The notes: generated by a model not told the origin, from the sequence alone. 62,916 nt of DNA, filler included, from Perkinsus chesapeaki ATCC PRA-425 (GCA_013115145.1; 4 parts of 4 records of this genome joined end to end with filler, not necessarily neighbours in it); one strand, 5' to 3'. Positions 4,528-16,253 are shown, counted from the whole stretch's first letter. Numbers and translations are program-made.

Positions 4528-7500
4528 TCAGACGAGCTCATCACTCGTGTCTTCTGTAACGGTAACGTTACTGGCATGATCATTCATAAAAACTCGATAA
4601 CGTCTATTTGCTACACGACACAGTTCGGAGTGGAAGGTGGTGCAAATGACCTGAATAGCAGCATTAATAACAATTATTATCGGCGGTTTTCTTTACCTGA
4701 GCAGGATTGCCTGATTCGGGGTTGGCCACCGAACAGACGAGACGAGCCACAGCTTCGCGATATCTGAGACAAGACAGAGTGGTATGAGACAGGCCATGCC
4801 AGGTGCAACTTACTGCGGGTCGAGGGCTGCATCGATCTCGTCGAAAATATAGAATGGGGGCTGCTCGACTCTCTGCATTGCGAGAAGGAGGGCCACTGCA
4901 ACCTTAAAAAAGTGAAGCTGCTATCAGAGTTATACGGCTACGGAAATGACGATGACCAGAGCAAGGTTGCACTTCTCGTGGTACAACTGAGTGCGACGGA
5001 AGAACCCACCACAGTCTTTTGGCCACCGCTTAGCTCCGGCATCCTTCTCATTCTTCCCTTAGCTGCCGAGAACGTCACCTCCAATGCAACACCAACATAC
5101 CTCAAGCAAGGCAGTATAACGCAAAACGGTTATTAAACGCTAGCTTACTCTTCCTCGCCGGTTGAGGAGCTCACAGTGCTGTCGCTTTCATCGCCCTCAG
5201 TTGGCTTTCTACACGGATTCCGTCTGAGTAGCTTCATCCTTGCATTCCCGCTGGGAACCTGATATCGAGCTCCAATCAGGAGGACTTGCGGGCGTACAAG
5301 CTCATTAAATGCATTGGAGAAGTTCTCATTAATTTGAGCAAAACTCTTGATAATGTTATCTTTTTTCTCAGCATCAAGACTTCTAATAAGATCATCTATG
5401 GCCGCCTGATGAGGGTCAATGGGTCCGTCGGATGAATCCGTGTTTCGGACTTGGCCTTCGTCCATTTCCTGTTGTTTATGTAACAACTCTTCGTACTGCC
5501 CATTCAGCTGCTGGTACCTGCGTTGCTGAGGATTGCATGTCAATCTGATGAACAACAATCCCGCCTTACTGTTCCTCAGCTTTGTTATTAACACGGTTGA
5601 GTTTAGAAATGTCTATTGTGCATTGTGCCAGTCTTTTCTGCAGTACACTTGTATCCTGAATAACACAACTTAACGGACTTAACCGACTTATCAAATCCAC
5701 GGTTAATGAATGATAGCCATTCAAACACAGGACTACACAGCGTATTTGCGGTGTACATCTGTGATGCTTCTGATAACGCCATCGATGTCCTCAACCTCCG
5801 GCTGCCGAGCTATGATCTCATCAAGTTCGGAGTTCGCCAGACTCTGCCGTTCTCCGTAGCTTGATGGGCAAATATTCTGAGCCAATCTCTCTGAAATACT
5901 TACTATTTAACCTTATGCATTTTCTCATCTAAAGCCGCCTGATTTGCCGCAACTGAGGACTCCAGTTCGGCAGTCTCGTTCGCTAGGTCCTCCAAGTAAG
6001 AGGCTGCATAATGCACTTCATGGGGCTCGTTCATAGGGACTTACACTGCGAACTCTCAGCCTCGCGCAGCTCTGTCATTCGCTCCTCCGCGAGCAACAAC
6101 TCTTGTTCGATGTCAGCGAGCTCCCCGGCTAGCCACCGTATCCTCCTGACAGTTTCAGCTGCATTGCACCATCTCTGACGCGTCCAACTGCTCATCCTTC
6201 ATAGAGGACTCTTCCCTTCGTATCCGTTCAGATGTCCTTTCGCGTATCTCATTTTGCAAGGTAAGGACACGCTTTCTATATACGAGCGCATGTCGTGACC
6301 GGAGACCCTCGATAACTTCGCGCAGCTCTGCCATGGCCCTGGGAGGCGTATCCCTGTTCGTTGGAGGTTCCGGTCTCACTTCATTCTTTCTGCCAACGTC
6401 TTTTTCTTCTCTGACAAATCCTGGTCTAGGCGGTGCAACTCAGCGGCTTCTGCCTCCGTCACACCCCCGGCATCGCCCACATCGGGTACTTAGACAAAAC
6501 ACTTATTGCACCCGTTAGGCATGTAGCACCTCGTGCTGCTGCTGCTGTTGCTTCAAGTACAGTGATATCTAACTTTAATGAGTTGCGTTCTATGTCGTAC
6601 TGCCTAGCTAATCTGAAGGCAGTGGATCTTTGTTCAGGTTCCTCATATCGAAGAGAGGGCTTGTCTCACCGCTTTGTGACATCGATGCTGTGAGTGAGCC
6701 CCTGCCGAGCCTCCACCAGCTCCGACAGCTCTCGGTTGCTCACAGTTTCGCTCTGGAACGCAGACTGCCGCCAGCATATTCTCGAGAGGCTCACGCGTAA
6801 GTTTTGTTGTAGTTCGTTTCCAAACAGGGAGAGATTCTGCTCAAGTTCATCTTTAAAGGATTCCTTCTGCTGGATCTCTTGAGAAACTTTCTCGTATTCT
6901 TCCTCAAGGGTTTTCATCTCCTCTCGGAGGGACGACAGTTTTGCCCTGACTCGATTGAGTGGTTGGCAATGTTCTGGACATACGATTACCAACTAGAGAT
7001 CCTCGTATAACACTTTGGATCGATGAAGCCTCCTTTTAGAGCGCCTGAGCGAATAGTCAGGTAAGCTCTCGTAGCTCACGGCTGAGGGCGCTCTGCTAGC
7101 GACAGGCGGCGAGTAGAACGATGCACCTCTTCGAGTGAATACATCTCCAGCTGCAGTGACAACGCTAAGGCCCCTCTTCGTGAGCCTTTGTTCATCCCCC
7201 GCTTTTGCTGCCAGCGCGTACCTGAAGGCACTTGCCATCCAGCTGACGCATACCAAAGGGTTGGCACCTCTTCCACACCTTTTCTGCCGCACACTTGGCC
7301 CATACGGGAGCCTCAATTACATCTGTCAAGAATACTAACCCATTCTCCCTTAGCGGTGGCGATGTCGTGGATGCCGATAGCTACGAGATAGGGCTACTGT
7401 GGTGCTGTTGGAGCAAGTCAAACCGTACATTTTCAAGAGGGCAGAAGGTAGCCTTCAGATGCCTTCTACCGTCCTCCCGTTTTGAGTTCAACCACTCGAT

Positions 7501-13400: not shown

Positions 13401-16253
13401 CCGCACCCATCAAGTCAGTAAGCGAAAACTCTATCTAGGATTCGAGACGGAGCGACAACAATGACATGTCACGTGGCTTACTTGTTGCAAAGGCGTTAGA
13501 GTGACCCGTAACGGTTTGCCCATCTCGACTTGCTTCTCTCGAATGAAGTTGAGGCATTCTTCGCCAACCTTATCATCATCCACCAACACATTAAACAAGG
13601 ATAAGCCGCCAGTGACTTCCGCGCTTAGGCGATATTGCTGAGGGATAACAGTGAGTAGTGGACACTAATTTACGTTTTCCTTCAAGATGGGAGTAGTAAA
13701 TCCGTGTATCAGCCCATCCCCTCACTTCTAGGATATCAAGATGCTCGATCAATAGGCCATGAATGCCGTCAATACCGGATTCCATTAACCATGTGTACCT
13801 GAGGGAAGGCTGGCCCTCAGGTCACCGAAGCAGACTTACCCTTCGCGCACGGCAGGGGGTGCAGTGCGCCAAACAGCTTCCAGTAGTTCTTGCCGTTCTC
13901 TGACGATGCTCTCCAACTCCTCCTTCAAGGCTGAAATTTCCTGCAAAGAGCAGATACACTCCCGCTACTTAGCACCCGACAATAGCAGAAAGCACTGACT
14001 AAATCATTCCATGCCGGAGCAAGGGTTGTGCTGCAGTGAATGGTAATGATGCAGGTACCTTGGACTTCTCCCTTATAGCATCTTGTGTATCGATGATACT
14101 CTTTTCAGCATCTATCAGATCCCCTCCGATATTCTTCTCGGCATGAGCTTCACTCTCCGCTTCAAGACGGGCAATCTCGTCAGTTAATCGCCCAACTAAA
14201 AGGAGCACCCACAACATAAGTCTCATTAGACTGCCTCGGCTCACTCTCCTGCTCATCCCGTTCCAGCTGCTCCATTTGTTTTGCCAAGAGTGCCTCCACC
14301 TCCTCCAACCTTTTGCTTTTGGCGTCAACTTTCGTTTTTAGGATCTCGTTGCGGTCGGCAACGGACTCGTAACTGATTCCGGTACAATCAGAAAATTTGA
14401 TGATCAAAATTCTTTGGCGTCCCCAAGAACTTGATGGAAGTTGCGCGAGAAAAAACAGCTGGCCCTGTGGCGCAACGGTAGCGCATCTGACTCCAGATCA
14501 GAAGGTTGTCCGTTCGAATCGGGCCGGGGTCATTTTTGGACAGTCAAACTAGAAAGAGGCTGGGAGCCCGCTCATTGTAGTCCATTTTGGACAATTCGAC
14601 CAGAATCGGCAACTAGCATGGCACATGACTCAGCTTACCTGGGTCCCGAGCCTCTCTTCGCAGCCAACTTCTCACGTTTCCCATTCAATGCGGCCAACTC
14701 AGACCTTACGGAGCTACATTCAACAATCATCAACTGACCGACCGCCTCCGCCGCCTTACTTCTGCTTCTCCAATAGAGCCTTCAACTGTTCCCGTTTCTC
14801 TATCAGACCATTCGTCACCTCAACGCACTCGGCTCGTGCCTCCTCTAGCCGCTCTTTCACAACACTGATGCTCGCTGTGTCTGGTGCAAATTCGATCAGA
14901 GCCAGTCTACAGCACAGATGCTTACTCTGCTCCTCAGTGTGCTTATTTCCCTCACATGACGCACTCAGCTCCGCGTATTCGGCAGATAAGTTCTCACGCC
15001 GTTTGGCCAGGAATCTCACTAAAACCACCAAGTCATCGCCCTGCATCAAGACTGCCGGCTCCTACACCTTCGTATGGTCTCATTCAAGTCCTTCGTTAGC
15101 TCATCCAACTCGCCCTTTTCTTTATCAGCATTGTCTGATATGTCCGCCAAGACTGCCCTCTCACCCCCGAGTTCTCTTAGAATCTCAGAAGCCTGCCATA
15201 AATGAACATTCAACTGTTAAAGAACTGGGTATGTTACCTCAGCTTCAAGCTCCTTTACGCGTTCCTTACATTGCCTCTTTTCCCTATCAGCAATTACACT
15301 TTCAATGGCCACCTTCTCCCGCAGCAAACCTCTGGTTCTGAAGGCCAGTACTGTAGCCTCCCGAGTGCCCCTCAGTATGCTACATCTTCAACTCCTGCTG
15401 GTCTTCGTCCAGCCGTTCTAGCTTCTCCCGTATATCCTCCATAACCTCGGCAATGTGCTCCCTCTTCTTTCGTGTGTTCTCCAGAACTTTCAGCGATTCA
15501 CCTCGCCTGCAGCAAATACCACTACGGGGGGCCATAAGGGCAGCAACCAACCCTACCGAACATCGTAGATATGCGCCCCTGAGACTTCCTTCAACAGATC
15601 CAGTCTATCACCATCCGACATAGACGTCAAAGATACGACTTTGTCCCGTTCAACTATGCAGTACCTGCCACCATACCACGCCTACCAGCTAGGCTTCCGC
15701 TTAGGAAGCATCCCACGTGTTTTGCTTAGTGCTCAGTCCAGCCCCCTCCAGCCAGCTATCTACCTCTGCCTTCTGTACTGATTTACCGTTCCATTCGTAC
15801 CTACCCTTCAGCTACATCGACAGTGTCGAAGAGTGACATTTTACGTGTCAGTGGCGATGGTAATACTGCGGCGAAGGACGACCTCAGCCTTATCAACTGG
15901 TATACGACCATCCGAGTTATCAAATGTTATCTCGACAAATGCCGAGGCCGCCTGATGTCCCTGACCTAACGCACCACTGTGACCACAGTAACAACCTCAA
16001 TGAGGTACTCTCGTAGAGCAAAGCACGCCTCTGCTGCTCATTAGTCGCCCCTTCCCCGCCTAGGGCGAACCTTATTGCCGAGAATCTAGGCAAGAGTGAT
16101 GTTGAATCCACATCCCGCCCCTCCATATTACATATTGCTCTTTCCGCTACCATTAAGCCCTACGAATACATTAACACCGGCGTGGAGATCTACTATAGTA
16201 GTTTGGTCTCTATAGGTCTTATAACCCTTTAAGGAGAGCTTCTTTAAATGCAT
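10409..16253 (-). CDS. SMC3: Cohesin subunit SMC3, paralog B (multi-exon, altered Q-loop and signature motif)
   Basis: Same exon 1 as A; [19 protein letters not shown]; YCIVERDK (15643-15651); hinge [26 protein letters not shown] (~12936-12953); ELGGSQKTV (10869-10883); [13 protein letters not shown]; [11 protein letters not shown]; stop TAA 10409-10411. Length (5.8 kb) matches copy A. Confidence 0.9.
14461..14532 (+). tRNA. tRNA-Trp (CCA), antisense inside an SMC3-B intron
   Basis: GGCCCTG/CGGGGTC acceptor, GCGC D-stem, TCTGA-CTCCAGA-TCAGA anticodon arm, GTTCGAATC B-box, followed by TTTTT terminator. Confidence 0.95.
16132..16253 (-). repeat. 122-bp direct repeat = coding exon 1 of SMC3-B (partner at 10071-10192)
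   Basis: Near-identical to 10071-10192; repeats are 6061 bp apart. Confidence 0.95.

Follow-up and report, generated by a model that had tools for sequence, protein, structure and literature searches.

A stretch of DNA from Perkinsus chesapeaki ATCC PRA-425 (GCA_013115145.1), analysed as a window of 62,916 nucleotides (nt) with filler included, carries two neighbouring genes for the cohesin subunit SMC3, and one of these, here called B, probably encodes a naturally ATPase-weakened, dispensable cohesin subunit. B and its neighbour, A, lie on a 24,143-nt contig, where they were found by six-frame reading and comparison of the paralogs; all coordinates are those of the window (Table 1). To our knowledge, SMC3 is a single-copy gene in nearly all cases, and its Q-loop glutamine, its LSGGQ signature and the lysine pair K105/K106 are invariant or nearly so across eukaryotes. 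Purifying selection has nevertheless maintained B in P. chesapeaki and P. olseni, where B has changed more slowly than A, especially in the hinge. A full-length SMC3 without the Q-loop glutamine, LSGGQ and K105/K106, maintained in two species with a canonical copy adjacent, amounts to a natural separation-of-function allele, and it bears on how the two asymmetric ATP sites of cohesin and the acetylation of Smc3 divide loading, release and locking.

Two SMC3 genes and the motifs that separate them

The preliminary description of this DNA had claimed two deeply diverged SMC3 genes arranged head to tail, 216 bp apart, with open exons in B, and all of this was borne out. Both genes lie on the minus strand and have 35 exons and 34 introns apiece; every intron is GT-AG, there are no in-frame stops, and 35 of 35 B exons are open. 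A self-written spliced protein-to-DNA aligner returned the two annotated proteins (P0001 for B, P0006 for A) exactly. Outside exon 1, A and B are 41–45% identical. Both proteins have the SMC architecture, with Pfam SMC_N and SMC_hinge domains, and all top protein-database matches are SMC3. The best solved-structure matches are likewise SMC3 chains (E 2e-44 for the N-terminal head, 4e-22 for the C-terminal head), while PDB matches to SMC1, SMC2 and Smc are weaker (1e-8 to 1e-21).

The two copies differ most clearly in their catalytic and regulatory motifs. A has the Q-loop V-E-Q-G and the signature L-S-G-G-Q, whereas B reads E-R-D and L-G-G-S-Q in their place, with codons exactly as first described. 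Residue numbering was fixed by alignment to solved structures, in which the B Q-loop residue corresponds to human Q141. Around the positions of the acetyl-acceptor lysines (human numbering K105/K106) B reads I-A-T-D and has neither lysine, and A reads K-T, with one. Each deviant B codon is two bases away from the codon of A, which excludes single-base read errors. Walker A, the Walker B Asp-Glu pair, the D-loop, the R-loop arginine and the hinge glycines are kept in both proteins; B thus retains, as had also been claimed, Walker A, Walker B with the D-loop, the hinge GxxxGG and TFRPEL. A itself departs from the SMC3 norm, with TFHSEL where TFRPEL is usual.

These differences were placed against a full-length alignment with 108 other SMC3 proteins, in which 194 columns are conserved at 93% or more. 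A and B each retain 131/194 of these columns, and the residues lost are not the same. Losses specific to B include K105, Y137, Q141, G142, S1101 and G1103 (numbering of reference P0121), and those specific to A fall elsewhere, for example at F42, E67, F82, N134 and the arginine of TFRPEL. The glutamine and glycine of the Q-loop and the serine and second glycine of the signature are 100% invariant in the 108 outgroup proteins.

In SMC proteins each ATP site is completed by the signature motif of the opposite head. The Q-loop glutamine contacts Mg and the gamma-phosphate of ATP, and Q141 of SMC3 swings in on head engagement. As proposed in the preliminary description, the substitutions in B are thus predicted to affect both composite ATP sites, its own through the Q-loop and the SMC1 site through the signature that faces it. 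The Walker B glutamate and D-loop kept in B argue against a fully dead head.

Conservation in P. olseni, loss in P. marinus and the history of exon 1

An ortholog of B is intact in P. olseni, where genomic context in isolates of this species places a second SMC gene directly upstream of A, in the same TPR-B-A order as in P. chesapeaki. These orthologs were missed by a full-length protein search, probably owing to annotations in which B and A are fused (P0126, 2523 amino acids (aa)), and were recovered through genomic context. P. olseni B has 35 exons, with lengths equal to those of P. chesapeaki B except for exon 31. Its motifs are a V-E-N-G Q-loop, an L-S-G-S-Q signature (present in all four B haplotypes seen), T-T at the lysine positions, and TFRPE. 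Between the two species B is 69% identical and A 54%, and the disparity is greatest in the hinge (82% for B, 46% for A); the B heads are 82% (N-terminal) and 78% (C-terminal) identical. Cross-species synonymous divergence (dS) is saturated (the NG86 and YN00 methods fail, and maximum-likelihood dS is 3–20), so selection was measured only from nonsynonymous divergence (dN) and from the ratio of nonsynonymous to synonymous polymorphism (pN/pS) within P. olseni. Among P. olseni haplotypes, pN/pS is 0.14–0.21 for B (binomial p 7e-6 to 1e-7 against neutrality) and 0.18–0.45 for A. Together, the open exons, the orthology and the low pN/pS indicate that B is selectively maintained, and is neither a decaying duplicate nor a sequencing artefact.

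The comparison also settles which features of B are shared. The preliminary description had looked to the conservation of ERD and LGGSQ: the exact residues are not conserved, P. olseni having VENG and LSGSQ, but the loss of the invariant glutamine, the change of the second signature glycine to serine and the loss of the lysines are common to both B copies, and P. chesapeaki additionally has a serine-to-glycine change. The Q-loop glutamine is thus replaced in B by arginine (P. chesapeaki) or asparagine (P. olseni) and is present in A; the B signature is LGGSQ or LSGSQ where that of A is LSGGQ (FSGGQ in P. marinus), and in place of the acetyl-acceptor pair B has A-T or T-T and A has K-T. That the B orthologs differ from each other at K105 and Q141 suggests that these positions are now free to vary and that their ancestral role has been lost. 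Two ways in which the earlier account might have failed, decay of B and sequencing error behind the substitutions, are answered by the same data: no stops or frameshifts occur in the 35 exons, pN/pS lies far below 1, and the P. olseni ortholog confirms the degeneracy as genuine.

With exon 1 left out, the tree groups the A proteins of P. chesapeaki and P. olseni (support 100), their B proteins (100), and A with B (100). Tip branches are longer for A (0.54/0.36) than for B (0.24/0.18), and all four Perkinsus copies sit on a long shared stem of 1.65 substitutions per site. The tandem duplication of SMC3 took place within the Perkinsus lineage and predates the separation of P. chesapeaki from P. 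olseni and P. marinus; both copies have retained all 34 introns since.

Exon 1, from the start codon to Walker A, has a separate history. The B exon 1 region is identical to 10069-10193 at 124/125 nt, and exon 1 proper at 121/122 nt. A and B differ in this exon at 1/122 positions in P. chesapeaki and at 3–5/122 in P. olseni, against 19–22/122 between the species, and some variants are common to A and B haplotypes in P. olseni. All other exons are 44–71% identical between paralogs, always below ortholog identity, and the identity of A and B ends at the start codon on one side and a few bases into intron 1 on the other. The simplest reading is ongoing gene conversion, confined to the sole stretch with enough remaining homology. 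Because conversion homogenises exon 1, the Walker A motif of B cannot count as separate evidence that B is under constraint. The exon is a clean case of gene conversion limited to about 120 nt within otherwise saturated paralogs, and phylogenies or primers drawn from the 5' end will mislead.

In P. marinus ATCC 50983, A is intact, with 35 exons, the glutamine and glycine of the Q-loop, F-S-G-G-Q, K-T and TFHPEL. Its identity with the A of P. olseni (62%) exceeds that with the A of P. chesapeaki (48%), which places P. marinus with P. olseni. Here B survives only as a relic. The interval from DnaJ to A is about 2.3 kb, compared with about 9.3 kb in P. olseni, and it holds the tRNA-Trp of B intron 11 (matching P. 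olseni at 75/75 nt), a last B exon that can still be recognised although it is altered (TFRSG for TFRPE, stop lost) and weak collinear traces of B exons 10, 12 and 13. Protein-database searches with the full-length protein and with short pieces returned no other B-like protein of P. marinus, and the short-piece searches for transcript-derived or P. marinus B yielded nothing but pieces from P. olseni and a single fragment of P. marinus A. Of the B loci in the three species, only that of P. marinus has the features of a pseudogene. The relic in the reference genome indicates that B is dispensable in at least that lineage, where A alone suffices; the P. marinus genome has been described as polyploid, and another haplotype could carry an intact B. 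A link between B retention and polyploidy was considered and dropped, since P. marinus too is described as polyploid.

Predicted behaviour of B and competing explanations

It is very likely that B is a functional, specialised paralog. As to its role, the motifs incline us, by a small measure, towards an accessory SMC3 that would bind ATP, hydrolyse it poorly and escape control by acetylation while working beside canonical A-cohesin. B would still bind ATP and pair with SMC1 and kleisin, would hydrolyse ATP slowly at both composite sites, and would be open neither to stimulation by way of the DNA-sensing lysines nor to locking by acetylation of the Eco1 type, the outcome being a long-lived, slowly released accessory cohesin alongside A-cohesin. 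From the conserved Walker B glutamate and D-loop, B is expected to bind ATP and engage heads, and from a defective element in each site together with the missing lysines, slow turnover outside acetylation control is expected. The specific mechanism in full, an ATP-binding, head-engaging ring with slow turnover and outside acetylation control, is a possibility to be held tentatively, rather short of an even prospect. B does combine the hallmarks of an attenuated ABC-type ATPase: a kept P-loop, lineage-wide loss of catalytic residues and purifying selection, although retention of the P-loop is weak evidence because its exon is homogenised with that of A.

B resembles canonical SMC3 (human SMC3, S. 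pombe Psm3, yeast Smc3) in its head, coiled coil and hinge, and in its Walker A and B motifs, D-loop, R-loop arginine and hinge glycines. It differs in lacking Q141, K105/K106 and a canonical signature; A differs in its TFHSEL and single lysine, and both copies lie on the very long Perkinsus stem. Vertebrate SMC1-beta is a meiosis-specific cohesin paralog and, like B, a lineage-specific SMC duplicate retained beside a housekeeping copy; unlike B, it keeps canonical ATPase motifs, as far as we know. A further parallel is found in the degenerate nucleotide-binding sites of heterodimeric ABC transporters, which bind ATP, show conserved loss of catalytic residues and hydrolyse slowly or not at all. 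In those transporters the deviant residues of both subunits meet in one site, whereas the Q-loop and signature of B belong to two. The analogy of cohesin sites to degenerate transporter sites has been drawn before (PMC4769319).

Experimental precedent comes from the yeast Smc1 hypomorphs L1129V, G1132S and D1164E (Elbatsh et al., 2016; PMC4769319). G1132S is the same change of the second signature glycine to serine as in B. Like L1129V, this allele is viable and bypasses Eco1, with ATP hydrolysis severely lowered. The combination of lowered ATPase with functional cohesin is what is predicted for B, and the acetylation independence of these alleles matches its missing lysines. Unlike B, they are laboratory alleles of Smc1 that hit the site built from the Smc3 Walker A/B motifs; the glycine-to-serine change of B lies in SMC3 and hits the other site, and the Smc3-side site would be affected through the Q-loop instead. 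It is the site built from Smc3 Walker A/B, beside the acetylated lysines, that drives release, and the analogous Smc3 allele, L1126V, did not bypass Eco1 (PMC4769319).

The lack of DNA-sensing, acetylatable lysines together with a crippled Q-loop at the release site leads to a bolder version, which we consider decidedly unlikely: B-cohesin might be a naturally pre-locked ring that holds DNA without Eco1 and resists Wapl-type release, leaving the dynamic, ATP-driven work to A. If this were true, Perkinsus would have assigned the stable and the dynamic state of a single protein to two separate genes, with conversion keeping the P-loop exon the same. Several points weigh against a weakened accessory subunit of any kind. 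Asparagine could still do the work of the Q-loop residue in P. olseni, and a serine next to glycine might partly rescue the signature. Full-length and short-piece searches of protein databases found no transcript-derived B proteins, and one small metatranscriptome run alone holds 5% of the sampled words. B is also more conserved than A, which is unexpected for a mere accessory, and it is dispensable in the P. marinus reference lineage.

The main rival explanation is that the substitutions are tolerated or compensated, so that B is a normally active SMC3 and the copies differ mainly in the time or place of their expression or in their partner (subfunctionalisation). We regard this as a serious contender, if an unlikely one. 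Strong purifying selection across B, the heads included (82% and 78% identity), the retention of Walker A/B, the D-loop and the R-loop arginine, the milder asparagine and LSGSQ of P. olseni B, and the equal numbers of conserved positions lost by A and B (63/194 each) would all suit an active enzyme. Such an enzyme would nonetheless lack Q141 and the second signature glycine, both 100% invariant in the 108 other SMC3 proteins, and would carry the glycine-to-serine change that severely impairs hydrolysis in yeast Smc1 (PMC4769319). The differences between B orthologs at Q141 and K105, moreover, suggest lost constraint and not a new optimum. A more distant alternative would take B out of classical cohesin altogether, pairing it with A or placing it in a new SMC complex that performs, for example, SMC5/6 tasks. 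A survey found neither SMC5 nor SMC6 in P. marinus or dinoflagellates (PMC8665677), the hinge of B is far more conserved than that of A, and the losses of conserved residues in A and B are complementary. P. marinus, however, is without SMC5/6 and without B, so that B can be no general replacement, and an A-B pair would leave one defective element in each ATP site; this arrangement seems very improbable.

Two further explanations would deny B any function or accuracy. That it is a decaying duplicate in P. chesapeaki might be argued from the lost catalytic residues, the correction that exon 17 of the annotated model needs and the decay of B in P. marinus. This view is already contradicted, and scarcely credible, given that 1225/1225 codons are open (a chance of about 3e-26 for random codons), that 34/34 introns are GT-AG, that identity to P. 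olseni B (69%) exceeds that of the A orthologs and that pN/pS is 0.14–0.21. Sequencing or assembly error as the source of the odd motifs is next to impossible. Although B was read in one P. chesapeaki assembly only, the two-base difference of every deviant codon from A speaks against it, as do the related states of four P. olseni haplotypes (N141, LSGSQ, no lysines) and the DNA runs of a second study, which hold 98–99% of the words of the neighbouring A stretch.

SMC duplicates have been surveyed by Yoshinaga and Inagaki (2021; PMC8665677), who list SMC4 in Oxytricha and Trichomonas, SMC2 in Paramecium and SMC6 in plants. Unlike the present case, no SMC3 or Perkinsus duplicate was reported there and no loss of catalytic motifs was described. 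Literature searches found no description of an SMC3 paralog of B's kind, and a metagenome scan gave one unrelated SMC at 27% identity. Also new here are the concerted evolution restricted to exon 1, the TFHSEL of A, the exon 17 mis-splice in the public model and the P. marinus relic around an intact tRNA-Trp. CRISPR/Cas9 editing has been described in P. marinus (PMC8062965), and the loss of B in an editable species offers a ready comparison, in which B could be added there and removed from P. olseni or P. chesapeaki.

Feature coordinates, gene models and neighbouring genes

Table 1. Features of the SMC3 locus, in window coordinates unless another contig (L001, P. olseni; L006, P. marinus) is named.
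Feature	Position	Strand	Remarks
SMC3 paralog A (FOL47_008538, P0006)	10192-4528	minus	coding sequence 10192-4531, stop 4530-4528
SMC3 paralog B (FOL47_008539, P0001)	16253-10409	minus	coding sequence 16253-10412, stop 10411-10409
Spacer, B stop to A start	10193-10408	minus	216 nt
B exon 1 (start codon to Walker A)	16132-16253	minus	concerted with A exon 1
A exon 1, conversion-tract partner	10071-10192	minus	
B exon 17, corrected (hinge)	13272-13393	minus	AAG acceptor; spliced alignment guided by A and P. olseni B
A Q-loop codons CAA GGG (Q-G)	9587-9592	minus	E-Q-G reads GAA CAA GGG from 9595
B Q-loop codons CGG GAC (R141, D142)	15643-15648	minus	E-R-D reads GAA CGG GAC, 15651-15643
B codons GCC ACT (A-T) at K105/K106 positions	15850-15855	minus	aligned to S. 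pombe Psm3 K105 K106
A signature L-S-G-G-Q	5019-5033	minus	canonical
B signature L-G-G-S-Q	10869-10883	minus	aligns to human L1115-Q1119
B Walker B and D-loop, L-D-E-V-D-A-A-L-D	10719-10745	minus	canonical; Walker B Glu aligns to human E1144
B S-T-F-R-P-E-L	10508-10528	minus	ancestral state
A T-T-F-H-S-E-L	4621-4641	minus	derived; H common to P. olseni and P. marinus A
Upstream TPR gene	16357-17184	minus	exon pieces 58-90% identical to the P. olseni TPR upstream of B
tRNA-Trp(CCA), antisense in B intron 11	14460-14533	plus	ARAGORN; same place in P. olseni
tRNA-Leu(TAG), antisense in A intron 10	8454-8533	plus	ARAGORN; inside A in P. olseni and P. marinus too
Corresponding tRNA genes	L001 3727-3798, 11724-11803; L006 9638-9709, 12176-12256		

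Several public gene models of this locus require correction. The annotated exon 17 of B (13434-13394, 41 nt) is wrong, as it omits a conserved hinge stretch of about 20 aa that is present in A. Alignments guided by A and by P. olseni B each independently pick 13393-13272, and exon 17 of P. olseni B likewise measures 122 nt and uses an AAG acceptor; the alignment guided by P. olseni B otherwise recovers the same P. chesapeaki B exons as the annotation. The curated B protein is 1225 aa long. Annotated A (1224 aa) retains an in-frame 45-nt intron 29 and falls to 1209 aa after splicing. In both genes intron 29 contains no stop and has a length divisible by three (B 11323-11373, 51 nt; A 5406-5450, 45 nt), so its retention would add 17 residues to B or 15 to A with the frame intact. 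Two other models are in error, P0126 as a 2523-aa fusion of B and A, and P0005 through a retained intron and a false C-terminal extension. A true B-A fusion protein was considered and judged unlikely, since the B tail past the fusion donor is conserved across species and its stop lies at the same place. A separation of 216 nt on the same strand (145 nt in P. olseni, whose genes are fused in one annotation) suggests co-expression at least as much as stage-specific expression.

Two features of the P. olseni loci bear on their annotation. Intron 31 of B (L001 7572-9308) measures 1737 nt, compared with 77 nt in P. chesapeaki, and the P0126 model, from another isolate, reads parts of it as coding. 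In GCA_013115135.1 (L002, about 3600-9927) an insert of some 6.3 kb, with an integrase-type (rve) retroelement gene and a second open reading frame, sits between the two annotated halves of A, so that the annotation splits the gene; pN/pS is highest (0.45) for the A of this haplotype. Upstream of the B start in P. chesapeaki is a 15-nt motif, CAGTTCATAATTAAC (16261-16275, minus strand), that is identical in P. olseni (L001, about 1926-1940) within a flank that otherwise differs between the two species; a role in trans-splicing or as a promoter element is possible.

The tRNA-Trp gene of B intron 11 is intact in P. marinus though its host gene has decayed. B intron 17 (180 nt) holds, at about 13150-13240 on the minus strand, a sequence resembling tRNA-Pro(TGG), read by eye, with an imperfect acceptor stem and T-arm. 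On the other side of A, two eukaryotic-type carbonic anhydrase genes stand in tandem at 469-1347 and 3099-3968 (plus strand). The reading frame of the second contains a TAG (3459-3461, between Pfam profile positions 103 and 106), which could mark a pseudogene, a read error or read-through. Pfam gives no match for three long open frames (18422-19483, 20715-21983 and 23230-24141, plus strand). On that side of the P. olseni locus a DnaJ gene follows TPR, and sequence from this flank is similar to parts of 17283-17576 and 19620-19898 in P. chesapeaki.

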